From positions 248,001 through 312,000 of the forward strand of contig JAIVFI010000001.1 of the NCBI GenBank assembly GCA_025558095.1: a stretch of 64,000 nucleotides of DNA, written 5' to 3'. A model generated the notes under the pieces. It ran no database searches and was not told where the DNA came from. It saw only the letters and a list, made by a program, of their open reading frames with translations. Made by a program: the position numbers and the translations under genes. Positions 33,031-61,093 of this stretch are shown here, piece after piece. The DNA comes from Hyaloraphidium curvatum SAG 235-1 (taxonomy: Eukaryota > Fungi > Monoblepharomycota). How positions within the stretch are numbered: the stretch's first letter is position 1; the number at the start of each line of letters is the position of its first letter.

Positions 33031-33338
33031 TTGCTATGTCCGTCGGTTTTGCGAAGCTCATCGGGCTTCCCGATGCCATCGGGGCTCCACCGGTGCCCTT
33101 GCGCAGGGCGTGCAGCCCGAAGATCGCCCGTGGATCGCGCTCAAGGAATCCCGCGCTAGGCCAGCGACATCTGGTCAATCCTGGACGAAAACACGTCGCC
33201 ATGGGCTCCAAGCTAAGTTTCCTTGGATTTCGGGCGGTATCGAGCAGGATGCCAAGCAGTTCGACGCAACCCGAACAAGGGACTTAATGACCGACAACGC
33301 GGGGCCACCAGCCGAGCCCCGGCTCGCGCAGCGGCAGC

Positions 33339-41086: not shown

Positions 41087-42821
41087 ATGCCGGCGGGCGC
41101 CTTTTTGCCCCTCCGCCCACCTCCACCCCTTCGAATCTCTTTGCTGAACTTGAGCCGCGGCGCGGACCGGACATTTTCCGGGGATGCCGGGCTCCAGGGC
41201 GCGCCGCGGGCGGCGGCACCACCACGGGCCGCCGCCCGTCCCGCAGGGCATTTCGCGCGGCTTGCCGGACCGATTCCCCCTCCATTGATCCGGACAAATG
41301 TTCCACCGCGGATTTCGCCCGTCGGCCGGGGCGAGTTGGCCGGATTCCGCGCCTTCCGTGCCTCCCCCTTCCGGCTGGACATGCCGAAGCCGGTCGAGCG
41401 CGCGAACCCCGTTCCGATCCCCTCCGCACCCGCGCCGCCCGCTCCGACGCCCGAGATCGTCGAGGCCGACCGCCTTCCGGACTCGGTTCCCGCCGCGGCC
41501 GCGAAGGATCCCGACAAGATCGATCCCCGCGTCTGGCCGATAGCGGTGTCTTCGGCGCTCATGGGCCTCGCCATCGGCGTCGTGATCCCGCTCCTTCCCC
41601 TGTTTTCCAAGGAGCTGGGATTGACGACGTCGCAGTTCGGGATGCTGATCAGCTCCATGGGCCTGGCACGGCTGGTGCTCAACATCCCGGCCGCGACTCT
41701 GGTGGACCGAATCGGCAGGAAGCCGTTGCTGGTCGGCGGCCCCTTGATCACCAGCCTGAGCATGGTCGGGACTGGGCTCGCCCACGGGCTCAACGAGCTG
41801 ATCCTGTGGAGGATGATGACCGGCGCCGGCGGCTCCCTCCAAATGAGCGGCGCGCAATCCTACCTCTCCGACATCAGCACCACCGCCAACCGCGCGCGGA
41901 CCATCGCCCCGACCTCGATCGCCTTCCAGATCGGCTTCTCCATCGGCCCCTCCGTCTCGGGCCTCCTCGCCGAGGCGTACGGCCTCCGCCCGCCCTTCTT
42001 TTTCGTCGGCGCCGCCATCGCCCTCGTCGCCCTCAACAACCACCTCATGCTCCCCGAAACCCTCCCCCGCCGCCGCGAGGCGCCCCCCTCGGCCGACATC
42101 GTCCACGCCGACGGCCGCGTCACGCCTGCCCCGCCCTCTCACGCCGCCAAGCCGTCGGTGTTTTCGACCTGGCTGTCGCTGCTCCGCGAGCCCGACGTGC
42201 GGAGGGTGTCGCTGCTCCACTGTATCTTCTGGATCACGCAGTCGGGGTCGCTGATCACGCTGTTTCCCCTGCTGGCGTCGACCCAGTTCGGCCTGGGGGT
42301 CTCGGCGATCGGGACCATCTGTGGGTTGGCTTTCACAGGCGCTCGTTTCGTTGGCTAACCGCAATTTCGATCCAGTCACCGTCCACGCGCTCATCGGCGC
42401 CCTAGGCGCCCAGCCGGCCTCATGGTTCTCGGACAAGTTTGGTCGCAAGTCCGCCCTCGTCCCCGCCATGGCCTTGATCAGCGCCGGCGTCATGCTAACC
42501 CCCTTTGCGACGACCGCGACGCAGCTCTACATGTGCGCGGGGCTGTGGTCCCTCGGCTCCTCCCTCGTCGGCTCGTCGACGACGGCGTACGTGGCGGACC
42601 TGGTGCCGCGGCAGGACATGCGCGGGCAGGCGCTGGGGCTGCTCCGGTCGTTCGGCGACCTGGGCCTGATGCTGGGCGCGGCGACGCTGGGGTGGATCGC
42701 GGAGGGGTGGGGGATCGGGACGGCGTTCACGGTCAACGGGGTCGTTTTGCTCGCAATGGTGGCCAGGTTCGGCTGGGCGGCGAGGGAGACGGCGGGCAGA
42801 TGGGCCAAGAAGGCGCCGTGA
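41087..42821 (+). CDS. MFS transporter (12-TM, DHA1/TetA-like); intron ~42321-42375; start may instead be 41381
   Basis: Motif A in both halves (LVDRIGRKP, FSDKFGRKS); RMMTGAGG; regularly spaced TM helices. Confidence 0.9.
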
Positions 42822-42872
42822 TGGGAATCGATTTGCCGGCCCGTGCTTTGGCGCACCGCGACTTGACACGCC

Positions 42873-43801
42873 TCACTGGGGATCGATCTCGCCGATGCAG
42901 AACCCGTGCTTGCCCGAGGGCACCCTGTACTCCATGTTGCACTCGATCTCCCTCACCCACCCCTCCTTCTTTGCCCCGTCCCACGCCTTCTGCACCCCCT
43001 TGGACCAGTCCCCGTACCCTTGCAGGTCGTCCATCAGGAGGAAGTTCCTCCGCGCGGCGAGTCTGCGCATGTTCTTCAGGTCCGCCGACGCCGCGGCCTC
43101 GTCGTGCCCACCGTCGACGATCACCACGTCGCACCGCACCTCCGGGTGTGCGGCGGCGAACTCCGGCACCGTCCGCCGCGAGTCGCCGTCGTGCACCTCC
43201 ACCCGGCCGGGGAACAGCTCCTTCAGCGTCGCCCGCGCGGCGGGGCCGTAATCTTTATGTGGGAGGTCGAAAGCGATGTACCGCGATATGGGCGGGTGCG
43301 CCGACAGGAAGGCAGTGGCGGAATGGCCGCCTGTCCGCCGCGGGACGCGTCAGCCGGGACTGGCGAGGGCCGCGGAGCGGGATGGGGCCCACCGTTGAAC
43401 CCCGTCTCGCACACCGTCCTGATCCACGGGTTCTGCGACACCAGCTGCACGTAAAAGGCCGTCTGCGCGGGGAACCAGCCCGTGTGGCCCTCCATCTTCT
43501 TGATCAGCTCGTCCTGCGCGACGCCGAGGGCCGCGGCGAGCGCGGCGTTGAGCCGCGAGACGGCCGAGGGGTACATCGGCACGCGTTTTTCGACGGCGTC
43601 GGGCGGTGCGACGGCAGGCCGGGGCGCGGGAGAGGGCGGGGCGGAGGTGTCCCCGGAAAGGTCCAGAGAGACCGCCCCGTTGCCAGGCACGGCGGGCGCG
43701 GTCCCCGGCTGCCAGAGCGACGCGCTCAGGAAAACGATAAAGACGCCCGCAACCCCCGCAAAAAGCAGGTTCTGCCGCCGGGCAGCAAGCGGCGTGGACA
43801 T
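42873..43801 (-). CDS. Membrane-anchored class I SAM-dependent methyltransferase (Methyltransf_24-like), one intron
   Basis: N-terminal signal anchor LLFAGVAGVFIVFLSASLW; VCETGFNG|GHSA; GDS; VIVDGGH; MDD. Confidence 0.85.
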
Positions 43802-43890
43802 GCTGGGGATGTTTATTCGCGCCCACTGCGTCCCTGACACATCCCCTCGCGTACCCTTCGGTTCCCAGCAACCGCATGGCACGATGGAGG

Positions 43891-44908
43891 ATGATCCCCG
43901 CCGCGACCGCGTTGTTTTTCCTCTTGGGCGCGGGGACGCGGTTGTCGGCGCCCTCCTCTCCCCCCGGCACCGACAAGCGCGAGCTGGAGACGCAGCTGGA
44001 GGAAGCAGCCGCGTCGAACCCTTTCCTCCGCTGTGCCCTCGGGATTTTCAATCGCCGGCCGTGGGACGGGGTGTTTGTCCCCCTGTTCCCGGAAGAGGAC
44101 CGGCCAGAGAGTTCCCCTTGGCCGGAGGCCATCTACCTGATCCAATACTCCCCGCTGAAGCAGCGGCGGGACTATCTGCGGACGCTGCTGGCCGGGATGC
44201 GGCCGTCCCTGAAGCTGGTCGTCGGGTTCGACAGGGAGGCCCTGTCGCCCGAAGACCAGGCGTGCCTCCCCCCGGGGCCGAACGCGGACGATCCCCGGAC
44301 GAAGGAGATTCCTCCCCGGCGGACGTGGATGCAGCTCGCACCGGGGGAAGTCTCCCTCGGCGCCAAGCACTACGCCGTCTACCTCGACGTCTTGCGGCGG
44401 GGGCTGCAGAACGCCCTCGTGCTCGAAGACGACGTGGCGCTCGACCCGGAGCTGGCGGCGCTGGAGCCCGCCGTGGACTTTGCTGCCGCTTTGGCCGCCG
44501 TATCGAGCGCCGCGGCGCAGCTCCCGGAGAACTACTCCGTCTTCGCCCCCGGGTCGTGCTACGAGTTCCACGGCGCCGGGCCGCGAACCGCTGCGCGTGC
44601 CCCTGGCAAGGGCGCTCGCGCAGCTCAACGCCTCCCTAACCCACCCCCGCGTTTTCCCGGCGCACAGATCGCGGTGCACCCACGCGTACGCCGTCTCGGC
44701 TTTGGGCGCGGCGCGGATGCTGCAACGGCTGCCGATGTCGTGCGCGGTGGATTGGATGATGAACGACGAGACGCGACCGTACAACGTCGCGATCGGAAAC
44801 GGGCGCGGGCCGGGGGTATGGTGGATGGAGCCGCCGGTTTTCGCGCAGGCGGACGACGCGGCGCTGGGGCGGAGCGCGATACGGGCGGGGACGGAGAAGG
44901 GCGACTAG
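43891..44908 (+). CDS. Glycosyltransferase family 25-like, with an apparent frameshift near 44560-44600
   Basis: Hydrophobic N-terminus, GEVSLGAKH and ALVLEDDV lie in one frame; SRCTHAYAVSALGAARML…VDW lies in another frame ending at TAG 44908. Confidence 0.75.
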
Positions 44909-45493
44909 CGGGGACGGGGGATTCGATGGGGGAGGGGGCTGCTAAGATCCGGCACTACCAGCGCCACTACCTGATCGGGACCAACACTCCGACCTCTCTC
45001 GTTCCCGCAGTGATGGAATCTCCAGGGACGTTCCATCCCGAGTTCGAGCGGCTTCTTCAACAGCTCTCTCTCCTCGCCTTCCCCCGCGGCCCTGACCCTG
45101 ACGGCCCCGGGGATGACATCGATGGGCTGAGGGCCCTCTTCATGACTTCCGCACGCCAGCGGCTTACGGCGGCCCTGGTGCGCGGCACAGAACCCATATT
45201 CCGACGCCGGGTCAATCTTTGCGTTCGCGGCAACGGCGGCGGCTCTGCTGGAGGTTCTTCGGACGGTCAGGATTCAGGATCGGGGTCGCTGCAGGGGGCG
45301 TCCACGGCGGCTGGGAGGGCGGCCGGTGAGGTAAGTCGTCGGGTGGAGGGCACGGCTCAGTGGCTCTACGAGATGGAAAGGTAAATTTCGGGGGGCAGGG
45401 CTTCGCTTTTCGTGTATAAGGACCGCCCGCGCAAATGGACCCGTTGATATTGTTTGTGCGTCACACTGATTCGACGGTGTCCCCGCCCGAGCG

Positions 45494-46642
45494 ATGCACC
45501 TCGAGCGCGCGTGGCCCGCGCTGGCGGCCGGCGTGCTGATCTCGCTGGCGGCGGTTCTCGCGTGCTTCAGCGCCGCGGGCGGCGACGTGGGCTGGCGGCC
45601 CGCGCCCGCAGGCCCGCCATCGCCGTCACCGCGCTCCGCGGACGACATCGTCCCCCGGGCGGACGGCGCCGCGCTGCTCGCGGCCTTCAGGGAGCGCGCA
45701 CGGCGGCTGGACCTGCCCTTAAATGCCCCGCCGAGCCCGGCGTGGTGGGAGCGCGCCGCGGCCCACGACGGATCCCCAAAGTGCGACTTTGCCCCCGGCG
45801 CTGGCGACGCGCACGAGTGGCAGGCAATGCGGAGGGACGCCGGCGGGGGACAATCGCCCGACGTGTTCGACGTGGCGATGTTCAACAGCGAGATGGACGT
45901 GCTGGAGGTGCGCGTCAGGGAGCTGCACCCCGTCGTGAAGCGCTTCGTGCTCCTCGACTGCCGGGTGACCTTCACCGGCCGCCCGAAGCCCGCCGGAGAG
46001 GTCGCCCCGCCCGGCTTCTTCGCCAACGATCCGCGGTTCGCCCCCTTCGCCGCCAAAATCCTGCACCTCGTCGTCGACGCCTTCCCGGACACGGTGGAAA
46101 ACATCACCTGGAAGAGGGAGGGCTACCTCCGCCGGGAGGCCCTGCGGCGCGCCGTGGAGCACCTGAAGCCGCTGCCGGGGGACCTCTTCGTCACCGCGGA
46201 CCTGGACGAGATACCCAGGGGGTCGGCGCTGAACCGCCTCCGCCGCTGCCCGGGGTGGGCTTCCCCCGCAATGCTTACGGCCGTGGGCGGATACTACTCC
46301 TACGACGTGGAGGGCGACGAGTGGCCGTACCCGCACGTGTGGCGCTACATGCCCGGGATCCCTGTTCCCGACCCGGGCATGCTGCGCGGGGGGCGACCCC
46401 CCTCCCCCACGCGGATCCGGATGGCCGCGTGGCACTGCTCGTGGTGCTTGGGCCGCGTCGAGGAGTTCCTCAGGAAGATGGGGGACTACTCCCACACGGA
46501 GCTCGACACGCCGCGGGCGCGGGGCGTGCGCAGGCTGCTGCACTCGGTGCTCACGCGGACGGACATATACGACCGCGCGGTGGTGAAATTCAGGACGTCG
46601 AGGGTGAGGACGGGGCCGGGGGACATGATCTGCCTCCGCTAA
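45494..46642 (+). CDS. Glycosyltransferase family 17 (MGAT3/GnT-III-like), intronless
   Basis: Signal anchor; FNSEMDVLEVRVREL…VKRFVL…TFTGRPKP, ADLDEIP, WHCSWC, YSH. Confidence 0.9.
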   Translation: MHLERAWPALAAGVLISLAAVLACFSAAGGDVGWRPAPAGPPSPSPRSADDIVPRADGAALLAAFRERARRLDLPLNAPPSPAWWERAAAHDGSPKCDFAPGAGDAHEWQAMRRDAGGGQSPDVFDVAMFNSEMDVLEVRVRELHPVVKRFVLLDCRVTFTGRPKPAGEVAPPGFFANDPRFAPFAAKILHLVVDAFPDTVENITWKREGYLRREALRRAVEHLKPLPGDLFVTADLDEIPRGSALNRLRRCPGWASPAMLTAVGGYYSYDVEGDEWPYPHVWRYMPGIPVPDPGMLRGGRPPSPTRIRMAAWHCSWCLGRVEEFLRKMGDYSHTELDTPRARGVRRLLHSVLTRTDIYDRAVVKFRTSRVRTGPGDMICLR

Positions 46643-46665
46643 ATCGCGGCGCCCGGCGGGACACG

Positions 46666-47865
46666 ATGACTGTGATCGCGGCTGCGGCCGGGCGGGCGCT
46701 GGCCCTCGCTGCTGCGGCGATGGCGGTCGCGCTCGCCGTCTTCGCCGTGGCTGTCGGCCGGCCGGGGGCGGGGACTGTGGGAGCCGGCGCCCGTGCCGCA
46801 TGCCCGCTTGCGCCGCCGGACTGCGAGCGCGTGCCGCCGTGCGCGGGCGCCGCCTTGCAATGCGGCGTCGACGTCCTCGGCGCCGCGTGGCTCGCCGGCG
46901 GCCCGCCGCCGCTTCCCTGCCAGGCGGCGGCGTGCGCGCTCCATTCGCGCGGCGGCGGCAATGTGTCGCTCAGCATCGTCGTCACGGCGTTCAGGTCGGC
47001 GCCGTTCGTCGGCCGCACCATCCGCGCCGTCGTCGCCGCCGCCGTCTCGCCCGCGTGGGAGCTGATCGTCGTGATCGACGGCAAACACGAACCCACCGAG
47101 GCCGCCGTGCTCGACGCCGTGCGCGCCGCCGCCCACCCGGGCCTGCGCCGCGCCGCAGTGCTGCTCTCCCCGACCCCCGTCTTCGAGACCGCCTCAAACA
47201 ACCTCGGCCTGCGCGCCGCACGCGGGCAGCTGGCCGTGCTGTTCCAGGACGACATCTTCATGCGCACGAAAGGCTTCGACGCCATCCTCGCGCTGCCCTT
47301 CCAGCTGTGGGACGACGTGGCGGTCGTCTCGGGCCGCTGCGCGCACGGCCTCCGCGGCGGCCACTACGTTGGCCGCTGCGGCGTCGACGTCAACCTCCCG
47401 CTCTCCATGGGCCCCGCAGACCGCGCAAAGTTCCACGTGCGCGACACGGTCAACCGCGGGCCGTACGCCCTGCGCACCGACCGCGCCCGCGAGCTTGGGT
47501 TCTTCGACGAGCTCAACTTCCACCTCGGCGACGACGACCACGACCTCGCCTGCCGCGCATACGCCACGCGCGGGTGGGTCGCCGGCTCCGTCGCGATCGA
47601 CTTCGACTCGCCGCTGGCGCTGGGCGCCACCCGCCGCCCCAAGGAGGCCGAATCCGCGGCGGACGCCGCCTGCGCGGCCGACAGGAAGGCGCGCAGGAGG
47701 CCCGGCGGGGGGTTCCTGCACCGCGTGTGCCACGGCGGCGCGATGGCGCGGGGGGCGGGGGTGAAGGTGCACGACGAGGAGAGGGACATGTGCGCTCGGC
47801 CGGCGACAGGCTGCGAGTACATCGCGAAGCCGATGCTGGACTTGCCGGATGCGGGCGGGGGATGA
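46666..47865 (+). CDS. Glycosyltransferase family 2-like, intronless
   Basis: Signal anchor after ATG 46666; SIVVTAF, ELIVVIDG, NLGLRAARG, FQDD, GFFDE, DDHDL. Confidence 0.85.
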   Translation: MTVIAAAAGRALALAAAAMAVALAVFAVAVGRPGAGTVGAGARAACPLAPPDCERVPPCAGAALQCGVDVLGAAWLAGGPPPLPCQAAACALHSRGGGNVSLSIVVTAFRSAPFVGRTIRAVVAAAVSPAWELIVVIDGKHEPTEAAVLDAVRAAAHPGLRRAAVLLSPTPVFETASNNLGLRAARGQLAVLFQDDIFMRTKGFDAILALPFQLWDDVAVVSGRCAHGLRGGHYVGRCGVDVNLPLSMGPADRAKFHVRDTVNRGPYALRTDRARELGFFDELNFHLGDDDHDLACRAYATRGWVAGSVAIDFDSPLALGATRRPKEAESAADAACAADRKARRRPGGGFLHRVCHGGAMARGAGVKVHDEERDMCARPATGCEYIAKPMLDLPDAGGG

Positions 47866-48003
47866 CGACGGGGCGGATTGGTTGTTGTGCAACCTCCTCG
47901 GGAAACATGGCTCGATACCCATCCATTGTTCCGTGCAGGTAGTACGCGAGTCGACGCGCCCTCGTCCTGCCAGGTCATGAAGACATCCCATTCCGCCCGT
48001 AGA

Positions 48004-48957
48004 TCAGATCTCCCCCTTCTTGTCCCTCAGCACGGACGAGTACTCCTTTGCGCTCCCCTGCCGCGTCACCCTGGGCTTTGTCCAGAACGTCGTCACGTTG
48101 CGCAGCCCGTACGTGATCTCCCAATCGATCGGCAGGCTGAAGGGCGGCACCGCCCCCAGCAGGCACCGCGCCGCCGCGGCGTTTATCAAATAGGTGTCTC
48201 CGTAGTGGGCTCGCCGCAGGTTATGCTTCATCAGGTTGGCCGAGTAGCCCACCGCGCCCCGCGTCGAGAGCATCTGCGGGCCGGCGCCGGCCCAGACGCT
48301 CCACGGGCCCGCGGCGTCCTCGGGCCGCATCTGGCCGAGCCAGGAATCGAGCACCCGGACGGTGTCGTTGGCGAGGAAGATGACGTCGTCCTCGAGCACC
48401 AGCGCCGCGTCCAGGTCGAGGTCCGCGACCGCCTCCCAAATGAGGATGTGCTTCAGCGCCAGGGAAAAGATGCCGGAGGTCACGTTCAGCATCGGGACAA
48501 CTTTCGAGGCCGGCCAGTCGGGATTCTCCATCCTCGACGTGAGCAGCGACCGCGAAACGTACTGCTCCGGGTCCTTGGAATGGTACGCCCGCAAAATGTC
48601 GGGCGGCAGCGCGTCTCGCGGGAAATCCGTCACGTAAAACACCGGCACGTCCATGCCCCAGCTCGCAAACGCCCCGTCGAGGTACGCCCGCCTCTCTTTG
48701 AGCGCCGGCACGTGGATCACAAAGACGGCCTGCACGCCGAAGGGAGGGCGCCTGCGGGCGCGGATCCGGCGCTCCTTGAATTCCAGGATCTGCAGGCTGA
48801 GGTTCGACCGCGGGAGCAAGGGCGGGAGCGGAGCGGAGGGGTCTTCCGGGCGGGATTCGGGGGCCGCGGGGCACCCGCACGAGTTCAGGAGGTGGTGGCC
48901 GGCGGCGAGGAGCAGCAGCGCCGCGAGCACCGTCAGGATGCGGCCGCGCGAGACCAT
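48004..48957 (-). CDS. Glycosyltransferase family 25-like, intronless
   Basis: Signal anchor; VFVIHV…ERR, SLALKHILIW, ALVLEDDV, YLINAAAARCLL, PIDW. Confidence 0.85.
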   Translation of the reverse strand: MVSRGRILTVLAALLLLAAGHHLLNSCGCPAAPESRPEDPSAPLPPLLPRSNLSLQILEFKERRIRARRRPPFGVQAVFVIHVPALKERRAYLDGAFASWGMDVPVFYVTDFPRDALPPDILRAYHSKDPEQYVSRSLLTSRMENPDWPASKVVPMLNVTSGIFSLALKHILIWEAVADLDLDAALVLEDDVIFLANDTVRVLDSWLGQMRPEDAAGPWSVWAGAGPQMLSTRGAVGYSANLMKHNLRRAHYGDTYLINAAAARCLLGAVPPFSLPIDWEITYGLRNVTTFWTKPRVTRQGSAKEYSSVLRDKKGEI

Positions 48958-50149
48958 GGCTCATCTAGACGTGCGGAATGGCATGGATAATGAGGCAGTG
49001 GCGGGGTCTAAGGAGGGGATCCCTGGTGAGGGATCGCGGTCACAAGGACTTGCGTTGGTGCTCAATCGCGGCGGGATCGTGCACGCCGGTTCAGCGTCAG
49101 ATGCCTGCCGTGCCGCAAACCACTGGGCGCCGCGTTCGAGGCGGCGGGGTTGCAAAGGACGCGTCGAGAAACGCGCATTCGCTCCCCCGGACGATACGCG
49201 CTACCGCAGCCCGGCACGGGCGATGGAACACGCGGGCCGTTCCCGGACGATCTTTGGAGCGCGGTTGCCGGAAGGCCGCGCCTTGAGACTTGGACGCGCT
49301 CAACGCCGACGCGTCGGTCCTCAGTCGCTCTCGTGACGAACCACGGCTCGAACTGTCTCGCCGGGCGCGACGGGAGCACCAGATTCTTCGCCAACATATC
49401 TGTGTCAGTGATGGCGAGAACGAGCCGGACTCTGAGGACAAGTCGTTTTCGCCTTCGCCCAGTCCTCTCGTCCTGGCTTCGCCGCCCATTCAATCCACAA
49501 CGTGCCCCGCCTCCTCGTCAACCTGCCCGCGGCGGACCTGATCAAGCACACGGTGCTTCAACTCTCCTCCCTTAGAGCCCCGGCGCCATGCTCGCGGACC
49601 CCAGAAATCGCATCGCTCACCGGCCCTTCGTCCTCGAAATCCGCCTCGGCCTTTCGACTCCCTCGGATCCGCACCATGCTCCACTTTCCCGACTTCTGCC
49701 CGCGCCTGCTGACCCTGGACCTGCTGGGCGCGCGGGACTGGAGCAATGTCCTCCTTGCCGAGCTCCGGCGGCGGAGCGGACAGGGCCCGCCGTGATACTT
49801 GGCCGCGTACACGGACCGACCGGACCGCAGGCCACGGTTTCCCTGGACGCCGATGCGGAAGGCTTATGGATCGGCGAGCCGAGGCCGCTGAGGTGCAGAT
49901 ACAGGGAGCTTCTGACTATCCGTTGGCGCCGACGGCGTCCAGGGACAATCCGATCTGCTGTTCCTGCTGGTCGTTGTCGATGACGAGGACAGATATGCGG
50001 GCCTCGAATCCCGGCGCAACCCGCGACGCAGATTGGGAAAAGAGACTCTTTCTTTGCGGACAATTGGCCAAATCCCCAACTCCGGGACCCGGATAACCGA
50101 TTGCATGAAGCGCCAAGCCACCAAGGCAGGATTCATCGGAGGACAAAGT

Positions 50150-53100
50150 TGCAGAACAAATGAAGTTCATTATGTCGATTGCAAACAAGGTCAACTGTAC
50201 AAATCGGTCTCATCTACAACCTCTTCTTTCATGCCCAGCGTTCATTTCAGTTCCAGATTCCGATCGGCCGCTCAGGCCACGACGCGCGAGGTCGTGGTCT
50301 TGGAGAGCTTGGCCTGCGCGAGCATCTTGTCCGCCGATGCGGCCGCAGCCTCGGCGTCGGCCTTGGCCTCGGCGTTGCGCTTCGAGCGCCGGGCCAGGAG
50401 CACGCCGAGGGCGACGAGGGCGGCCGCCACCACGGCAGCGACGACGGCGATGCCGGCGATGGCCCCGGGCGAGAGCGACGAAGAGGAGGTGCTGAGCACG
50501 GTGACCGAGCCGTCGCTGGAGACCTGGATGTTCTCCGGCACCCGGATCGCGACAGGCTTGGTGACCAGCTCGGCGTCCTGGATCGACGAGGCCGTCTCGA
50601 TGTTCTGCACCTCGACGTCGCGGTAGAGGAGGCGGCGGCGGCGCTGGCCGGCGAAGTTCTGCCTCTGGTCGGCGTACATCCTGATGAGCATGGTGATGGT
50701 GTACGAGAGCTGCTTGTTGCGGTCGTTGGGCAGAAGGATCATGGCGTCAAGGCTGTCGTCCACGCTGTCGAAGCCGCTCAGCTCGGACGACCGAAGCCGG
50801 ATGTTGGGCGTGAACGAGGTGCGGATGGTCCACTGCTTGCCGGAGTCGGCCGAGTCGATGTCGCTGACGAAGTTGACGTTGGTGCCGATCGTCGTGATGG
50901 TGCCAGTAGAGGCACCGGAAAGGGCAGTGGGGTCAGCCGCAGTCCACAGGCTCCAGTAGCCCGAGAGGCCGTTCGCGCCCGTGCGGGCGACGCGGTACTC
51001 TTTGATCGCCACGGCGTCGAGCTGCTTGTTGGTGGTGAAGACGCCGTTGGCCTCGACGGTCTGGCCGATCGTGCGCGAGGTCCTGCGAGGAAACCAAACG
51101 TCAGAAGCTGCTCCATGGGCCACGTCGCCGCCAAACTCACTGAAGAACGTCGAACTGGGTGGTCCACGAGATGGGGAAGTCGGTCTGCGCGCTCTTGCAG
51201 AAGTCGATGTTGCCCGTGAACTTGAAGGCGCCGAGGTTGGTCAGCTGGAGCGCATCGCGCATCGTGACGTTGCCGCATTGGAAGTTCTGGGTGCCGTTGT
51301 AGGTCGAGTTGCAGTCCAGGTAGAAGTCGAACTGGTAGGCAGTTTCCGACGAGATCGAGCACGATGCCGCGATGGAGAGCGTCGGCGTCCACGTGTACGT
51401 GAGGACACCCTCGACCCGGCACTCTTCTCCAATGCTGTCGCATGCGGTGCCCCCGCTGGTGTGGTAGCCGTCCCGGTTGTTGGTGAACAGGTTGGAGAAG
51501 ACGCCGCCGGGGTAGACGGTGTTGTCCGTCAGGTCCTTGCCGGCGTACGTGTTGCTGCCGTCGTTCACGAGGAAGTTGTTGGCGTTGGCGGCGTAGATAG
51601 GCAGCTTGGCGAAGTAGGGGAATAACGTCGTGAGCTGGTAAGAGATGTGGGCCTTGACGACGCCGGCCTCGCTCTTCTCGTACGTGACGCCGGTGACCGT
51701 GAAGTCATCCTTGTCTGCAGGGAAGGACGCGTCAGATGGTGGGAGGCAGGACCGTGGCGAGGCAACTTACACATGTCTTCGGTGCTCGAGGTAGCGTTGG
51801 TCGTGTCGTTGTACTCGCTCTGCACCTGGATGATGACGTCGTACCAGGTCGACATGGCCGCGCGGGGCATGCCGGTGACGCTGCCGTTGACGCCGACCAA
51901 GTCGTTGTCCTGCCACTGCACGTGGATGCGGCCCTTGTAGTTGCGGTAGGTGCCGTTGGTCAGGGCCGACTCGTTGGCCGAGATGGTGAAGCCGCAGTTG
52001 GCGACCCCCGAGCCGCGGAAGGTCTCCCAGGCCATGGTCCATAGGTGGTTGAAGTAGCAGGTGGAGCCGGAGCTGGCCGCAGTCAGGGAGTTCGCCGCGT
52101 CGCTGATGATCACGTTCGTGGCCGGGGTGGCGACGTTGGCGAAGCGTTCGAAGGTCTGCTTGCATTGAGCGTTCCCGCCGGAAATGAGGGCATCGGCGGC
52201 CGCGAAGGTGGTGACCGAGGGGCCGGAGAGGGCAATGTCGAGTTTCCTGGAGAAGGGGTCAGCGCCGGCCCGCGTTGCGACGCCCGCGAGGTGCCCACCT
52301 AAAGTAGCCAGTGCCGTCGCCGGGCGCCGGAGGGCCGGTCTGCACCCAGAACTCGAGGGCGTCGGTGCCCGAGTTGACGACGTAGGTGTACGAGCTCGAG
52401 TCGCCGGCGGCGACCAGGCGGGGGCCAGCGGGGATGTAGCCAGGCTGCGGGACGGAACGTCAGCGCGGCATAGAGACCGCAGGCGAAGGAGGCTCACGTC
52501 GGTGTCGTTGCCGAGGGTGGGAAGCTGCATGGTGCAAGAGAGCGCGGCCTCGGCGGGCGCCGCGAGGGCCGCGAGGGCGAAGGCCCCGGCGAGGAGCAGC
52601 CTATTGCTGCGCGAGAGCATGTTGAGGTGGTGTCGTTGCGTGGGTGATGAGGTTCTGCGGGCGGGGGCGTCGGACCTATATAGCGCGCCGGGTGCGTCCT
52701 GGATGACGACAGAGGATCGAGGGCGAAAACAGGACATGACTAACTCACCCTGACTCAACCGGGTCGCCGCCCCAGGCCGCAAAAGACCACCGGAAAACCA
52801 GCAAACACGCCACCAGAGTCCGGCAGAGTATTTGAGACCTGATGCTTGCGCATCCGCAGCGTTTTGCGCTGCCCGGGGCGTCGTCCGAATCGCCGCCCTC
52901 GAAATCCTCGATTTGCTGATGTAAGCAAGGGCGTGGCGAATTGACTCAACCCAGTGGCGCTCGTCAGCAAGGGGCCCTCCCAGTGAGAACCAGGGATCCC
53001 GAGGCGCGGGATGGCCCGGGTGCTCCGGATTATCCGCCAGCCCCTCGAGTGGGTGGGGTTGGGCGGCCTCACGCGCCAGCGCCACCGGAGGCCGGTCGCT

Positions 53101-53370
53101 CGGCGGCCGAGCATCCGAGGCAAGCTGCCGCTCGAGAACCGGGCAACGGCGAGCAAGCAAGCGTTTGCCGGTGGATGGCCGCCCCGGAGGTCCTGCCCTG
53201 AAGATGTCGTAGGCCGGACATGGGCATCCGCGCTCACGTCCCCGCGGATGGCGGGTTCAACGCCATTCCTGCACTGCCGCTCCCGCGTAGGATATTGCCG
53301 GAGTCCGGAGTCGCATGCAAAGCTACAGCTCGGATGTCAAGCGCGGGCTCCCTCGCCCACAGGCGTAGGG
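50150..53370 (+). repeat. Direct duplication, copy 1 (offset 7582 bp to copy 2)
   Basis: All ORF translations from 50272 to 52753 recur unchanged at +7582. The flanks are similar but diverged. Confidence 0.95.
50272..52620 (-). CDS. Type I membrane/cell-surface glycoprotein, copy 1 (four short introns)
   Basis: Signal peptide MLSRSNRLLLAGAFALAALAAPAEA; Cys- and Thr-rich beta-like ectodomain with many N-x-S/T sequons; RRRRLL; TM GAIAGIAVVAAVVAAALVALGVLL; short basic tail; TATA at ~52677-52682. Confidence 0.85.
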
Positions 53371-54672
53371 CCACCAACCGCCGCCAGCCTCCGCGTGTGC
53401 TCCTCCAGCGCCGCCCGCAGCCTCCCCTCCCACGCCCGCATGCCGACCGGATCCCACGGCGCCTCGACGTCTTCCTTCGCGTCCCTGTCGGTCTTGTAGT
53501 GCAGCATCTTCAGCTCCGTGTTCGGATCCAGGTACCTCGGCCGCCGCGGCGGCGAATCCACAACGTGGACCGAGTGCGTGCCGACGTCGGGTGGGCGGAA
53601 GAAGACCTTGTGGCGGCCGGCGAGGTCGAAGGCCGGGTAGCGGAAGCGGGCGGAGGTGACCAGCGGCCGCGAACTCTGCGGGTCGACGGCGGTGATGTTG
53701 ACCGATCCAGGACCGCGCGAATAGAACCAGCTGTACGCGGTAAAGTGCGTCCTCCTGCCCGGTTTCGCGGCCGCCTCGATGCGCCGGAGCAGCGCAGGCA
53801 CCATCCGCTCCCCGATGGGCAGCATGTACTCGTCCTTGTCGTGGACGGTCATCCACTCGGCCAGCGCGCCGTACCGCCGGATGCAGTGGTTGTTGGCGGT
53901 GATCTGCTGCAGGACCCACGTCCGGCCGAGCTCGGGCTGCTTTCCGAGCTCGAAGCGGGGCCATGGCACCACGGTGACCAAGCCGTCGGCCACAAAAGGG
54001 CCGAGCGCGCGGGCCAGGTCGGCCGGGAAGGCCGAGTGCGGCTCGTGGTGCGCGTAGATGAAGAAGTGCGAGTAGCCAACGAGCCGGTGGAACGAAATCC
54101 ATTCCGGCAGTCCCTCGTCGCTATTGACCATAGTGCACACCGCGAGTTCGAAGGAGGGCGGTGCTTCCGGGCCGCAGCGAGAAGGATGGGGTTCAAGCCG
54201 GTAGAATCTGGCCGGAGACGCTCCGCGGGGCACTACGCCAACTCGAACAGTTCGCCCGCTGTCCAGCAGGGTTCGTGCGCTCGTAGGTATGGGGCAACGC
54301 CGGGCGAAGATGTGCTCGCTCGCATTGAGGTACTCTGAAGGTTGGACCACGGAGCGATGCCTGCCCTCGAACACGCAGTCCAATGGTGTGCGCTTCGCAC
54401 GGGACAGCGAAACAGTGCCTCCGTCAACACCGCCCAGCAGGGTCGCGTTCTGGTGCAGGGCGTCCGCGAGAAGCGCGAAACCGGGCGGCAGTGAGACAGC
54501 CGACAAATCGACATCGACGCTCCCCGGGGTGTGCAGGCCGGCAATACGCCCGTTTGTCGCGGGGTGACGAGTCCATTGCGTCCGACAAGATGAGCTTCGA
54601 CGTTCCGGCAGTGAGTGCGGCGTAAACGAGCAGGAGCGCCGGGAACCTGGGGACCCCGAGTCCGACGGGCAT
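53337..54672 (-). CDS. Glycosyltransferase family 92 / DUF23-like; 5' signal anchor lies in a different frame
   Basis: LAVCTMV…LPEWISFHRLVGYSHFFIY, NHCIRRY, WMTVHDKDEYM, HSVH, LHY. The ATG at 54672 (MPVGLGVPRFPALLLVYAALTAG) is out of frame with the catalytic ORF. Confidence 0.8.
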
Positions 54673-55012
54673 CGCACACTCCGATCAAGCCTTCAGTCCG
54701 ACCACGGCGATGCGTGCGAAGCTAGTTCGAATCCCCATGCTCGGCGTAGTTTCGAGAGAGAGATGAAGAGGCGCAAATGCGCTCCGAACCGTCGTACACT
54801 CCGCGTGCCTCGTTGATGACCTCGACGAAATCGGCCCCTCGAAAGACGCAGGATGGCCGCGAAACCAGCCGAAAAGATTGAAGAGCCGCGATATCTGTTG
54901 CCGATAGGCCCCGACATGTTGTCGCGCTGCAAGGACGCCATGCCCGCGATTTTTCGTATTCGCGTCCTAGGCGAGGCCCCCATATTCAACCGCTGGCGTC
55001 AGGCTCCCCGAA

Positions 55013-57639
55013 ATGCAGGCCACGGGGGCCGGCGGAGCGCCTTTCATGGGTACCGCTGGCCTTAGCGGGTCGGCCGAGTTGTCTTTCGGCCTCGGCGGTC
55101 CGGGTTCAGGCCAGATGGCGCTCTTCGATGAGCCACTGGGAGCCGCTCCGAACTCGGCCGGCACCAACGGCGCGACGTCGCCGGGAAATACTCTTCCACC
55201 GAGAGGCAGCGAAAAGCTGCATCCTCCGCGGGCACGGAAGGCGCGAGTTTCAGGCGGGGCTTCGCCGTACCCCGCAGAGCGCGACCGCCGCCTTTTGGGG
55301 ACCCATGCTGGCGCTGCCGTGGAAGATGGGATGGCTCAACATCACCAAACTCAGCTTTCACGGCAATCCCATGTGTCGCAATTGCCGACGGCGCCCGGCG
55401 CAAAGACTCCGGACGCGGTGCCTGCTCAGGAGGGCAATCGGGTCCTCGCCCTGTTTGCGGACCTGCCACAACTGCCGTCGCAGGCGGTTTACAATGAGCT
55501 GATCGGGCTTTACTTTGAGAAGCTTCCTCCGACGCTTGCCATAATTCACCGAGATCAGTTTTTGGGCTCGCTGGCCATCACCCCGTCGACCCCCGGCACT
55601 GAACAGCAGCCAGCCAACCGTGGCGGACGGCCACCGGCTTCGTTAGTGTTTTCCATGATTGCCCTGTCGTCCCGCTATCATCCTGCTTTCAAAGATTCTC
55701 CCGAACTGTGCCGGACAATGTGGTACGAACGTGCCAAGCGACTGCTGCTCCCGCGACTCGCCGATCGTGGCACGGCGGACATAGCGACGCTGAAGACCGT
55801 GCTGCACTTGTGCGTTTTTGCGCTGGGGCTTAGCATGTGGCAGGCGGCGTATTTCTGGCTCGGCACTGCCGTGAGCATGTCTCGAATGCTCGGCTTGTAC
55901 GTGGAGAACAGCGCGAACGCTGTCGGAGATTCAGAAGACGGCCTGCTTAAGGGGGCGGAACAGTTTCCGGAGCGTTGGATGCTGGACGCCGATGGCACCA
56001 GCGGGGATGTCCTGGCCAGTTCTGGCGACCAAGATCCTGTCGGAAAGGAGGAAAAACGGCGCTGCTATTGGGCGATTCGCAATCTCGACGTGTGAGTCGC
56101 TGTTGTTGGGCATTCGAGCTCGCAGGCAATGACGTTCGACGCCTTTTCGCAGCCATTTCGCCTTTGCGCTCAAGCGCCCGGCCATGTTCTCGTCTCGCGA
56201 GCATTTCTTCACGCTGCACATCCCCATTCCCGATGCCACCTTCTACGGCATCTTTGGCATATCTCCCACGGCGCTTTCGAAGGATCTGCCGCTGTTGGCG
56301 ACTACGGCGGTAACGATGGAGATGCTGTTTCGTCCCGTTGCGGGCAATCCGCTTCTCTTGAGCGAGAGCACTCTCGGTCCCTCGAGCTACATTGCCGCTC
56401 TCATGGACGTGCTCGCTTCCGTCGTGGAGTTTCGGCAACACTGCCATCGCCTGGGTTTTCTTGCCTTCCGCCCGACCTCGGAGAACCAGGCTTTCTATGT
56501 CAACAACGAAGCGGAGCGGATCGAGCTCAAGATGCGGACGTGGTGGCAACGTCTGCCAGAGACTGTCCGAGCAGTGCTTGCCGAGACGGACGCCGGGGGC
56601 GATCCGGATATGTTGTCTTCGGGCGTTCCTGGAGCTCTGGGATTCTCCGGAAGTCGGCTTCCCGTTGATCCAATCGTGCCGAGCAGTGGCTGGTGGTGGG
56701 GAGGGGAGGCAGAAGAGTACGACTTTATCTGCGCGGGCATGGCCTTCTTCGTCATCGGAGCCACTTTGTTTGGTGGGTTATCGTGCGCCCCCTTGCTTTG
56801 TCCGCCATCTAACGTTGGACGCAGCGCCCGAGTATAATCTCACTGCCACTGCCATGCGGCTTGCCTGCAAGGACAACGTTGTGCTCCATCCAGCCGCTGA
56901 TGGTTCGGTCCACGCGGATACCTTCTCAAGGGCGCAGACGGAAATTCGTCAGGTCGACGCGGCCTTGAGCGCCTGGCAGTCGTCTTCATGGTTTGCCCGC
57001 AGTGTAGACTACGCTTCTCGAGGATCTCGCCTCTTGCGCGTCATTGAGCAAATGTCAGGCAACGAAACGCGGCGGGACACCCCACTCTTTGCGTTCTGTG
57101 CCTACCAGCTGGGGCTTCTCAACCTAATCGCCGCGCGACAGCTGACTGTCGACCCTGGACTTTCCGCGAGCATGTTTACATCATCGGGCTCCGATGCAGG
57201 CCTTCTCGGAGGCGTTGCTCCCGGCCAGTTCTCCGCGGCGCTCTTGACCGTGTTTCGGAACAATCTCTTAGACCTCGCTGGCGTTTCGGCGCGACTGCTA
57301 GCTCAGCCGACCATTTTCAGCGGGCATTACGCTGCGTTCCCCGCCGATTCACCTGGGTCGCCCGTCTCGCGCGATCAAGTGCTGAATCCGAACGGCCATT
57401 TACTGAACCGCTTGCTTGGGGCTATCGGCGGAACCGGAGCGATACCTGTGCAGGTTGCCGGTGTCCACGGACTGTCTCGTGCGTCTGTATCTGCTCTTGC
57501 GACACCGATCGGGAACCCTGTAAGCGGGCAGGTCACGACAGCGCTGATGACGAACGGGCAGCTTGTTCTTGGACCTGGTTCTGGTGGAATTCTGGGATCT
57601 GGAGCCTCGGGAAGTTGGACTGGGGGCGCGTTTGGTTAG
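55013..57639 (+). CDS. Fungal-specific transcription factor domain protein (middle homology region), introns ~56092-56152 and ~56773-56826
   Basis: LIGLYFE…IIHRDQFL, AYFWLGTAVSMSRMLGL, EEKRRCYWAIRNLDV|HFAFALKRP. Confidence 0.82.
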
Positions 57640-57729
57640 GACAGCAGTGTATGTGGCGCGAAGACTTGTTCAGACCTGCACGCCTGTCCAGATGAGGCCG
57701 GACAGCGCGTACAAACGGGTGAAGCCGCC

Positions 57730-60700
57730 AGAACGAATATCAAGGTCATCAATCTCGATTGCGCACAAAGTCAACTGTACAAATCGGTCTCATCTACAAG
57801 CTTCTCCCTTCATGCCCAGCGTTCAGTTCAGTTCCAGAGTACGGATCGGCCGCTCAGGCCACGACGCGCGAGGTCGTGGTCTTGGAGAGCTTGGCCTGCG
57901 CGAGCATCTTGTCCGCCGATGCGGCCGCAGCCTCGGCGTCGGCCTTGGCCTCGGCGTTGCGCTTCGAGCGCCGGGCCAGGAGCACGCCGAGGGCGACGAG
58001 GGCGGCCGCCACCACGGCAGCGACGACGGCGATGCCGGCGATGGCCCCGGGCGAGAGCGACGAAGAGGAGGTGCTGAGCACGGTGACCGAGCCGTCGCTG
58101 GAGACCTGGATGTTCTCCGGCACCCGGATCGCGACAGGCTTGGTGACCAGCTCGGCGTCCTGGATCGACGAGGCCGTCTCGATGTTCTGCACCTCGACGT
58201 CGCGGTAGAGGAGGCGGCGGCGGCGCTGGCCGGCGAAGTTCTGCCTCTGGTCGGCGTACATCCTGATGAGCATGGTGATGGTGTACGAGAGCTGCTTGTT
58301 GCGGTCGTTGGGCAGAAGGATCATGGCGTCAAGGCTGTCGTCCACGCTGTCGAAGCCGCTCAGCTCGGACGACCGAAGCCGGATGTTGGGCGTGAACGAG
58401 GTGCGGATGGTCCACTGCTTGCCGGAGTCGGCCGAGTCGATGTCGCTGACGAAGTTGACGTTGGTGCCGATCGTCGTGATGGTGCCAGTAGAGGCACCGG
58501 AAAGGGCAGTGGGGTCAGCCGCAGTCCACAGGCTCCAGTAGCCCGAGAGGCCGTTCGCGCCCGTGCGGGCGACGCGGTACTCTTTGATCGCCACGGCGTC
58601 GAGCTGCTTGTTGGTGGTGAAGACGCCGTTGGCCTCGACGGTCTGGCCGATCGTGCGCGAGGTCCTGCGAGGAAACCAAACGTCAGAAGCTGCTCCATGG
58701 GCCACGTCGCCGCCAAACTCACTGAAGAACGTCGAACTGGGTGGTCCACGAGATGGGGAAGTCGGTCTGCGCGCTCTTGCAGAAGTCGATGTTGCCCGTG
58801 AACTTGAAGGCGCCGAGGTTGGTCAGCTGGAGCGCATCGCGCATCGTGACGTTGCCGCATTGGAAGTTCTGGGTGCCGTTGTAGGTCGAGTTGCAGTCCA
58901 GGTAGAAGTCGAACTGGTAGGCAGTTTCCGACGAGATCGAGCACGATGCCGCGATGGAGAGCGTCGGCGTCCACGTGTACGTGAGGACACCCTCGACCCG
59001 GCACTCTTCTCCAATGCTGTCGCATGCGGTGCCCCCGCTGGTGTGGTAGCCGTCCCGGTTGTTGGTGAACAGGTTGGAGAAGACGCCGCCGGGGTAGACG
59101 GTGTTGTCCGTCAGGTCCTTGCCGGCGTACGTGTTGCTGCCGTCGTTCACGAGGAAGTTGTTGGCGTTGGCGGCGTAGATAGGCAGCTTGGCGAAGTAGG
59201 GGAATAACGTCGTGAGCTGGTAAGAGATGTGGGCCTTGACGACGCCGGCCTCGCTCTTCTCGTACGTGACGCCGGTGACCGTGAAGTCATCCTTGTCTGC
59301 AGGGAAGGACGCGTCAGATGGTGGGAGGCAGGACCGTGGCGAGGCAACTTACACATGTCTTCGGTGCTCGAGGTAGCGTTGGTCGTGTCGTTGTACTCGC
59401 TCTGCACCTGGATGATGACGTCGTACCAGGTCGACATGGCCGCGCGGGGCATGCCGGTGACGCTGCCGTTGACGCCGACCAAGTCGTTGTCCTGCCACTG
59501 CACGTGGATGCGGCCCTTGTAGTTGCGGTAGGTGCCGTTGGTCAGGGCCGACTCGTTGGCCGAGATGGTGAAGCCGCAGTTGGCGACCCCCGAGCCGCGG
59601 AAGGTCTCCCAGGCCATGGTCCATAGGTGGTTGAAGTAGCAGGTGGAGCCGGAGCTGGCCGCAGTCAGGGAGTTCGCCGCGTCGCTGATGATCACGTTCG
59701 TGGCCGGGGTGGCGACGTTGGCGAAGCGTTCGAAGGTCTGCTTGCATTGAGCGTTCCCGCCGGAAATGAGGGCATCGGCGGCCGCGAAGGTGGTGACCGA
59801 GGGGCCGGAGAGGGCAATGTCGAGTTTCCTGGAGAAGGGGTCAGCGCCGGCCCGCGTTGCGACGCCCGCGAGGTGCCCACCTAAAGTAGCCAGTGCCGTC
59901 GCCGGGCGCCGGAGGGCCGGTCTGCACCCAGAACTCGAGGGCGTCGGTGCCCGAGTTGACGACGTAGGTGTACGAGCTCGAGTCGCCGGCGGCGACCAGG
60001 CGGGGGCCAGCGGGGATGTAGCCAGGCTGCGGGACGGAACGTCAGCGCGGCATAGAGACCGCAGGCGAAGGAGGCTCACGTCGGTGTCGTTGCCGAGGGT
60101 GGGAAGCTGCATGGTGCAAGAGAGCGCGGCCTCGGCGGGCGCCGCGAGGGCCGCGAGGGCGAAGGCCCCGGCGAGGAGCAGCCTATTGCTGCGCGAGAGC
60201 ATGTTGAGGTGGTGTCGTTGCGTGGGTGATGAGGTTCTGCGGGCGGGGGCGTCGGACCTATATAGCGCGCCGGGTGCGTCCTGGATGACGACAGAGGATC
60301 GAGGGCGAAAACAGGACATGACTAACTCACCCTGACTCAACCGGGTCGCCGCCCCAGGCCGCAAAAGACCACCGGAAAACCAGCAAACACGCCACCAGAG
60401 TCCGGCAGAGTATTTGAGACCTGATGCTTGCGCATCCGCAGCGTTTTGCGCTGCCCGGGGCGTCGTCCGAATCGCCGCCCTCGAAATCCTCGATTTGCTG
60501 ATGTAAGCAAGGGCGTGGCGAATTGACTCAACCCAGTGGCGCTCGTCAGCAAGGGGCCCTCCCAGTGAGAACCAGGGATCCCGAGGCGCGGGATGGCCCG
60601 GGTGCTCCGGATTATCCGCCAGCCCCTCGAGTGGGTGGGGTTGGGCGGCCTCACGCGCCAGCGCCACCGGAGGCCAGCCGGTCGGCGTTGGCTGAGGTCC

Positions 60701-60962
60701 GACGATCCGACGCAAGCTGGCGCTCGAAAACCGGAACAGAGCGCAAGCACGCGTTTGTCGGTGGATGGCCGCCCGGAGGTTCCCCGCTGAAGATGTCGTA
60801 GGCGAACAGGGGCATCCACGCTCACGTCGCCAGTGGGATGGTGAGCCGAATGCCATTCCTGCACTGCCGCTCCGCACGACGCCGTGTAGGATATTGCCGG
60901 AGTCGCATGGAAATCTACAGCTCGGATGTCAAGCGCGGGCTCCCTCTCCCACAGGCGTAGGG
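57730..60962 (+). repeat. Direct duplication, copy 2, interrupted at 60962 by a retrotransposon
   Basis: Matches 50150-53370 up to …acaggcgtaggg, after which TGTCAGG begins. Confidence 0.95.
57854..60202 (-). CDS. Type I membrane/cell-surface glycoprotein, copy 2
   Basis: Translations are identical to copy 1 in every listed ORF. Confidence 0.85.
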
Positions 60963-61093
60963 TGTCAGGACGGGGCGCGGGGGACCCGTAAAGACCTGTG
61001 TTGACGACGTTGAGGAGTCACTACACAGCACTGCGCCTAGTCTTCCCTCGCCGGGGACCACCGTCCCCCTTGCCCCGACGCCGGCGCGTTACA
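60963..61093 (-). repeat. 3' LTR (131 bp, TGTAAC…CTGACA) preceded by a G-run polypurine tract
   Basis: The minus strand reads GGTT-(G-run)-TGA|TGTAACGCG…CCTGACA. Host homology resumes exactly at 60962. Confidence 0.8.

Follow-up and report, generated by a model that had tools for sequence, protein, structure and literature searches.

Eukaryotic Golgi glycosyltransferases are usually scattered across the genome, and finding the enzymes that cooperate on one glycan is therefore slow biochemistry. The closest precedent for a different arrangement is found in Caenorhabditis elegans, where a study of the N-glycome listed, without assigning them a function, the clusters C13A2.1-12, K06H6.1-6 and T15D6.1-12, in which putative glycosyltransferases from more than one CAZy family are interspersed with methyltransferases, sugar-nucleotide transporters and DUF proteins (PMC7614267). 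Here we describe a cluster of glycosyltransferase (GT) genes in Hyaloraphidium curvatum SAG 235-1. It begins within a 64,000-nucleotide stretch of GenBank assembly GCA_025558095.1 (contig JAIVFI010000001.1, below C1; C1:248001-312000 in a 31.9-Mb assembly of 55 contigs; ~65% GC), which we refer to as the window. The window is eukaryotic in character, with spliced genes, a chromodomain-bearing Ty3/Gypsy element and a Fungal_trans-domain gene. As in C. elegans, putative glycosyltransferases of several CAZy families adjoin methyltransferases and proteins of unknown function in a nuclear genome, and any functional coupling is presumptive in both. The locus described here differs in holding GT25, GT17, GT92 and GT10 members, a Fungal_trans regulator and a repeated surface-protein gene, and in its GC-rich, fungus-like host. 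It differs also in that clustering is established statistically across the genome and that a nucleotide-sugar transporter is absent from the cluster. A preliminary description of the window had held that clustering of glycosyltransferases is foreign to eukaryotic secretory pathways; given the mixed C. elegans clusters, this premise was too strong (PMC7614267).

Four other systems invite comparison. The five-gene galactosaminogalactan cluster of Aspergillus and Metarhizium (PMC8224951, PMC7229062) likewise consists of co-located fungal genes, and those genes make one extracellular glycan. That cluster, conserved across genera, encodes just one transferase, large and of the synthase type, together with an epimerase, hydrolases and a deacetylase, whereas the present one combines at least eight Golgi-type transferases from six unrelated families with a methyltransferase and showed no conservation among distant relatives. 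Bacterial O-antigen and capsule loci also pack unrelated GT families and a tailoring methyltransferase into a few kilobases with very short spacers. Unlike them, the present locus has eukaryotic membrane anchors, mixed gene orientation and one intron-bearing gene, and no flippase, polymerase, ABC exporter, initiating phosphoglycosyltransferase or sugar-nucleotide gene was found among the open reading frames (ORFs) scanned at 40-75 kb. Plant Golgi methylation genes are, to our knowledge, not clustered. The plant system nevertheless offers a parallel, in that a luminal, anchored methyltransferase needs an importer of S-adenosylmethionine (SAM; GoSAMT in plants), and the genome studied here holds a gene of the corresponding MFS_5 family (10.1101/2021.07.06.451061). 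A sister cluster on contig C4, in which a weak GXM-like match lies beside GT47 and GT61, further recalls plant polysaccharide methylation. Unlike the plant system, the methyltransferase described here is of the Methyltransf_24 type rather than the DUF579 or QUA2 type, and the transporter in the cluster belongs to MFS_1. Finally, the glycosylation blocks of giant viruses contain GT25-like genes, once (locus L051) with an adjacent Methyltransf_24-like gene, but identity to the present proteins is 21-31% and we found no viral locus with two of the cluster's GT families.

Coding frames were chosen by codon-position GC (GC3 > GC1 > GC2) because high GC yields many spurious ORFs, and families were assigned from Pfam profile matches against curated cut-offs. 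The genes for the methyltransferase, the surface protein, GT25-1, GT92-A, the transcription factor and the major facilitator superfamily (MFS) transporter were searched as separate exons or pieces rather than as joined models. The cluster genes in the window are as follows (+ and -, strand).

~41381-42818, +: MFS_1-type transporter of at least two exons, start uncertain; MFS_1 at 126 and 70 bits in two ORF pieces
42873-43801, -: SAM-dependent methyltransferase, Methyltransf_24 (PF13578), type II membrane protein, two exons
43876-44908, +: GT25-1, head-to-head with the methyltransferase; PF01755 at 18.8 bits, below the cut-off of 24
44941-45186, +: short relic resembling the C-terminus of a repeated ORF
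45494-46642, +: GT17 (PF04724, MGAT3-type family), single ORF; 109 bits against a cut-off of 26
46666-47865, +: GT2, single ORF with N-terminal anchor; PF00535 at 29.2 bits against 23.3 and PF13641 at 30.9 against 27
48004-48957, -: GT25-2, single ORF with N-terminal anchor; PF01755 at 33.6 bits against 24
50272-52620, -: surface protein A, type I, with signal peptide, C-terminal transmembrane segment and short tail; at least three exons
53337-54677, -: GT92-A (PF01697); 58.9 bits against 23
55013-57639, +: Fungal_trans-domain protein (PF04082), putative regulator, about three exons, divergent from GT92-A; 41.7 bits against 23

These matches confirmed the five glycosyltransferase genes of four families (GT25 twice, GT17, GT2 and GT92) and the methyltransferase that the preliminary description had placed at 42.9-54.7 kb. 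They also bore out the MFS transporter said to flank the run, whose pieces matched MFS_1, Sugar_tr and MFS_3 only. The methyltransferase exon at 42876-43349 (-) scored 32 bits against a cut-off of 26.3, and 46.6 bits in the genome search. Its single intron, of 62 nt with GT..AG ends and a CTGAC branch site, interrupts SAM motif I, which is whole again (E-T-G-F-N-G-G-H-S) once the intron is removed; the transmembrane segment spans residues 10-31. In GT17 this segment spans residues 5-33, and the top non-self homologue is 35% identical. The database gene call for GT2 gives an identical product of 399 amino acids (aa). GT25-2 retains an LEDDV block, an acidic DxD-type motif of the GT-A fold, which is also kept in an intact paralogue on contig C10 and in three of four eukaryote-type relatives; the fourth (P0005) has VENDV. 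Similarly, a D-x-D-E motif is invariant across eight GT92 paralogues and is present in GT92-A. Sequence searches found no solved-structure relative for GT2, GT25-2 or GT92. Word-based homologue searches returned only GT25-2 itself and one match each for GT17 and GT2, these proteins being too divergent for the index.

Two of the glycosyltransferases have disrupted frames in the assembly. GT25-1 is 57-61% identical to the intact C10 paralogue (32.8 bits to PF01755), matched across two frames. Relative to that paralogue its frame shifts by +1 near 44575-44590, and its C-terminal third lies in a second-frame ORF (44480-44908), with too little space there for an intron. GT25-1 is either a pseudogene or the result of an assembly indel. 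In GT92-A, the ATG and anchor (~54672) are off-frame from the catalytic domain, with a 2-nt deletion relative to GT92-B, an intact copy further downstream (60.1 bits against 23 for PF01697). Both frame changes may be either mutations or assembly indels. The earlier view that the glycosyltransferases lack evident introns holds in that the ORFs are uninterrupted, but GT25-1 and GT92-A are frame-disrupted and the methyltransferase itself has an intron.

A short N-terminus followed by one hydrophobic segment, the layout of type II Golgi enzymes, characterizes the cluster enzymes and also most enzymes of the sister clusters; anchors with shorter hydrophobic stretches, such as that of GT25-1, were read directly from the sequence. 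The N-terminal anchors claimed for all the enzymes were thus present throughout as hydrophobic segments, although that of GT92-A is out of frame. The fungal transcription factor was supported by its Fungal_trans domain but not by a DNA-binding motif: the six-cysteine pattern of Zn2Cys6 proteins was not found in the three + frames of 54650-57750, nor was a Zn_clus match in Pfam, although an unrecognised upstream exon is possible.

We counted loci of eight families by six-frame profile searches across the genome. These yielded 3 loci of GT25 (two of them in the C1 cluster), 5 of GT17, 9 of GT92, 13 of Methyltransf_24, 5 of GT10, 12 of GT14, 10 of GT47 and 23 of GT61. A neighbour of a different family lay within 10 kb of 23 of the 80 loci (~29%), against 3.3 expected, and this number was reached in none of 2000 random placements in which the 80 loci were placed uniformly. 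Chance is excluded as the cause of the adjacency. The preliminary description had allowed that these families might be so expanded and scattered that adjacency is expected by chance; instead the families are small and no permutation matched the observed count. The C1 cluster is the largest, with seven of the 80 loci in addition to the GT2 gene.

Several sister clusters emerged from the same counts. Pfam searches of ORFs at C4:716001-746000 identified GT47, Methyltransf_24, GT92, a weak GXM/IRX15-like match, GT61, a second Methyltransf_24 and a GDSL esterase; several of these families are best known from plant cell-wall synthesis. At C5:654001-664000 (L016), GT17 lies between an FkbM-type Methyltransf_21 and a weak Methyltransf_23 match. 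A Fungal_trans protein, a polysaccharide pyruvyltransferase, GT14 and GT92 occupy C2:321001-331000 (L019), within a 35-kb stretch (C2:297-332 kb) that holds six of the 80 loci, including further GT14 and GT61 members. By coordinates alone, C21 pairs GT61 with Methyltransf_24 and C22 pairs GT14 with Methyltransf_24.

The spacing between genes within the C1 cluster is short. Only 23 nt separate the GT17 stop from the GT2 ATG (46640-46668), a spacing that makes this eukaryotic gene pair a candidate for bicistronic or overlapping transcription. The ATGs of the methyltransferase and GT25-1 are 74 nt apart, head-to-head; the stops of the MFS and methyltransferase genes are 57 nt apart, tail-to-tail; and GT2 and GT25-2 are separated by 138 nt, also tail-to-tail. 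Such short spacers would imply overlapping or shared transcription units.

The cluster extends past the end of the window. In extended coordinates, which join the window to the next 30 kb, it runs from ~42.9 to 74.5 kb, or ~32 kb. The MFS gene forms its upstream boundary, beyond which lie a leukotriene-A4-hydrolase homologue and two Cys-loop channel genes. Comparison of the window and the next 30 kb with themselves revealed a tandem array of three units around the surface-protein gene, in which the following further features lie.

50152-53370, no strand assigned: segmental duplication of 3.2 kb, copy 1; 97.6% identical to copy 2 (self-blastn)
57729-60962: segmental duplication, copy 2 (self-blastn)
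57854-60202, -: surface protein B, identical to A in the two exons compared
60963-64000 in the window, continuing to extended 66441, -: Ty3/Gypsy long terminal repeat (LTR) retrotransposon with chromodomain, Pol ORF
Extended 66442-67761: GT92-B, 91% identical to GT92-A
L001:4082-5800, just beyond the window, between units B and C: GT10 fucosyltransferase (PF00852); 43.6 bits against a cut-off of 23.9
Extended 69967-73152 (C1:317967-321152): segmental duplication, copy 3; 89% and 78% (self-blastn)
L012:2351-3499, after unit C: anchored ORF of 383 aa, no Pfam family

Unit A consists of surface protein A and GT92-A, unit B of surface protein B and GT92-B, and unit C of surface protein C followed by only a short GT92 remnant. 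The Gypsy element splits unit B, between surface protein B and GT92-B. It has identical 132-bp LTRs with TG..CA ends and a 5-bp target-site duplication (TAGGG), and its insertion is recent. The anchored 383-aa ORF had no Pfam match even at E=5; a weak Atlas lead to GT34/DUF1647-like proteins is unconfirmed, and an AlphaFold model made without an alignment had a pLDDT of 37 and was not used. The relic at 44941-45186 is 37% identical over 82 aa (tblastn) to L019:7641-8837, which itself matches an ORF of 1318 aa in L006, and it probably derives from a mobile element. Long ORFs of 901, 588 and 1318 aa lie at window positions 3-4472 and at L006:3769-7722, and the two regions have an identical 168-bp segment in common (window 7365-7532 and L006:7772-7939). 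A C-terminal motif region is common to the 1318-aa ORF, L019:7641-8837 and the relic, probably reflecting a repeated mobile-element protein.

The surface protein belongs to a lineage-specific family of about nine paralogues with no family match in Pfam or the Atlas. Ka/Ks between its copies (including one at C33:90.7-92.3 kb) ranges from 0.07 to 0.58, indicating that the gene is real and under constraint. The comparison of A with C gives a Ks of 0.06 for the middle exon and of 0.27 for the last one, a mosaic divergence that suggests ongoing gene conversion among the copies. The protein had been described as a sequon-rich type I surface protein. Its type I topology stands, but its nine sequons match the 8.7 expected from its Ser/Thr-rich composition. 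Nor does its proposed role as the substrate of the glycan fare well, because its distant paralogues lie among housekeeping genes and its sequons are at expectation; that role is speculation. Since these paralogues are unlinked to glycosyltransferases, the association of the surface protein with GT92 is explained by one local tandem duplication.

We consider it somewhat probable, judging from the sequence, that the locus is a native, lineage-specific Golgi glycan-tailoring cluster, predicted to make a β-linked, fucosylated and O-methylated glycan. Because the enzymes are predicted to be membrane-anchored and luminal, a shared role in building a glycan is the most economical reading. With a short cytosolic N-terminus, a hydrophobic anchor and a luminal catalytic domain, they would act one after another within the lumen of the Golgi, on glycoconjugates destined for secretion or for the surface. 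Enzymes of the GT25, GT17, GT2 and GT92 families would add β-linked galactose, glucose or N-acetylglucosamine, and GT10 would add fucose. The adjacent Fungal_trans protein may regulate the set, and the cluster would grow by tandem duplication. Purifying selection on the duplicated genes counts in favour of this proposal.

Methylation within the lumen requires import of SAM. A single MFS_5 (PF05631) gene was found in the genome (C2:30510-32082, up to 217 bits in four exon-like pieces), and the Methyltransf_24 enzyme may O-methylate the product with SAM imported by this C2-encoded transporter. A methylated product is plausible on the evidence of the methyltransferase gene, which adjoins GT25-1 head-to-head, and of the MFS_5 gene elsewhere in the genome. 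C. elegans SAMT-1 and the Arabidopsis GoSAMTs, proposed importers of SAM into the Golgi, belong to MFS_5 (10.1101/2021.07.06.451061; PMC4539729). The MFS transporter within the cluster was considered for the same role and rejected, as it belongs to MFS_1 and had no MFS_5 match at E<=0.01.

Several observations weigh against a glycan-building cluster. In the assembly the frame is broken in two of the window's five glycosyltransferases, the sugar specificities are read solely from family membership, and no gene for nucleotide-sugar synthesis or transport was found in the cluster. The surface-protein paralogues on C33, C40 and C14 sit amid housekeeping genes (a proteasome activator, a dienelactone hydrolase, an enoyl-CoA hydratase, a P-type ATPase and a VWA-RING protein) and have no glycosyltransferase neighbours. 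In addition, the nearest homologues of GT25-2, GT17 and GT2, which are only 33-45% identical, have no other cluster family beside them. The two top GT25-2 homologues, on contigs of 29 kb and 74 kb from a single sequencing run, neighbour kinases, an aldehyde dehydrogenase, a GST and a chitinase; the top GT17 and GT2 homologues lie on metagenome contigs of 2-5 kb and have no partner gene there. Because no linkage was conserved around these distant homologues, and in view of the duplications and the transposon, the arrangement appears to be young and lineage-specific.

The alternative that survives best, although we think it unlikely, is a hotspot of gene birth and death with no pathway coupling. 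Dispensable, lineage-specific glycosyltransferases would accumulate by local duplication and insertion in regions visited by transposons, and their proximity would say little about shared function. The cluster is indeed evolving quickly: it shows tandem duplication with signs of gene conversion, a Gypsy element has inserted recently and two members have disrupted frames. The three tandem copies of the surface-protein gene (a full GT92 accompanies two of them) and their signs of gene conversion, the Gypsy insertion, the mobile-element relic between GT25-1 and GT17, the two disrupted frames, a relaxed Ka/Ks of 0.45 (at Ks 0.11) between GT92-A and GT92-B, and the absence of conserved linkage around the nearest homologues are all consistent with such a hotspot. 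However, duplication cannot have set members of different families side by side, as is the case for most neighbours in the cluster. Partners of the same kinds also recur in independent clusters, where glycosyltransferases accompany a methyltransferase, a pyruvyltransferase or an esterase and, twice, a Fungal_trans protein. Spacers of 23-140 nt further suggest shared transcriptional control.

It is improbable that the locus is instead a cluster of the secondary-metabolite type, producing a secreted glycolipid or glycoside with an MFS exporter and a Fungal_trans regulator, as in the fungal clusters for MEL or cellobiose lipids. An MFS gene and a Fungal_trans gene around enzymes are the usual architecture of fungal metabolite clusters, and here such genes do flank or interrupt the enzymes. 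Yet Pfam searches of the ORFs scanned at 40-75 kb found no acyltransferase, P450, fatty-acid synthase or polyketide synthase, and the transferases belong to luminal type II Golgi families rather than to cytosolic GT1.

The preliminary description had also raised horizontal acquisition. On such a reading, a bacterial polysaccharide locus or a giant-virus glycosylation block would have entered the nuclear genome as an island. GT25 and GT2 are mainly bacterial families, and the glycosyltransferases are encoded by uninterrupted ORFs. When GT25-2 was searched exhaustively, no more than 174 relatives were returned. The top four, at 30-45% identity, are proteins of eukaryotic style that have N-terminal extensions and share a C-terminal motif; three are full length and carry a hydrophobic segment at the N-terminus. 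Most of the remaining matches measure ~230 aa, as bacterial GT25 enzymes usually do. Giant-virus metagenome-assembled genomes hold GT25 relatives, and 38 viral contigs in all carry them, but none has a second cluster GT family, and alignments of the viral proteins begin only at about query residue 75, past the N-terminal anchor region. A single-protein scan, which is an insensitive method, gave no close viral match to GT17. At L051:8871-9949 (IMG/VR GVMAG-S-1101162-73), a GT25-like gene lies tail-to-tail with a Methyltransf_24-like gene, both 21-26% identical to the genes in the window; the same pairing recurs at 42.9-44.9 kb of the window.

The composition and relationships of the cluster point instead to a native origin. 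Codon-position GC of the cluster genes (GC3 0.80-0.92) is within the range of neighbouring genes, and the methyltransferase gene is interrupted by a spliceosomal intron of canonical form (GT..AG, with a branch site). The enzymes bear eukaryotic type II anchors, and their paralogues are spread across many contigs. The eukaryotic Golgi families GT17, GT92 and GT10 had no match in 14 prokaryotic control genomes, in which the sister-cluster families GT14, GT47 and GT61 had only one or two. None of the cluster members matched an NCBIfam bacterial family, and no Wzx/Wzy, initiating transferase or sugar-nucleotide gene was found among the ORFs scanned at 40-75 kb. With native codon GC, anchors, an intron, genome-wide paralogues and viral identity of at most 31%, we regard an acquired island as the least credible explanation and a recent shared donor as very unlikely, although the GT25 and GT2 lineages of eukaryotes may have arisen from bacteria in the distant past.

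Other parts of the window have features of their own. The Cys-loop (pentameric ligand-gated ion channel) genes at 31092-33033 (-) and 33521-35290 (+) are inverted duplicates of ~75% identity. They match Pfam Neur_chan_LBD at 77 and 66 bits, together with the start of the membrane domain, and are unusual for a fungus-like genome. Between 14000 and 26000, GC is ~69%, the codon-position signal is absent and inverted repeats occur, the longest pair named being 15284-17415 against 25214-23125 (87%), with several shorter ones; this region is probably a non-coding repeat structure. At 8000-14000, GC falls to 49-55%, against ~65% elsewhere in the window.

If the cluster builds one glycan, it and its sisters would offer ready-made pathway hypotheses, including candidates for the poorly known O-methyltransferases of eukaryotic glycans. 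They would also provide a system for studying how metabolic clusters originate by recruitment and tandem duplication, and the frame-disrupted members and the recent retrotransposon show cluster formation under way. A broader and more doubtful proposal is that operon-like clusters hold a large share of the Golgi glycan-tailoring machinery of this organism, perhaps with shared or polycistronic transcripts and, as in a bacterial polysaccharide locus, one glycan for each cluster. Such clusters would mix many GT families with methyl-, pyruvyl- and acyl-modifying enzymes, some with a Fungal_trans regulator of their own. If this were true, eukaryotic glycan structures would become predictable from genome position.

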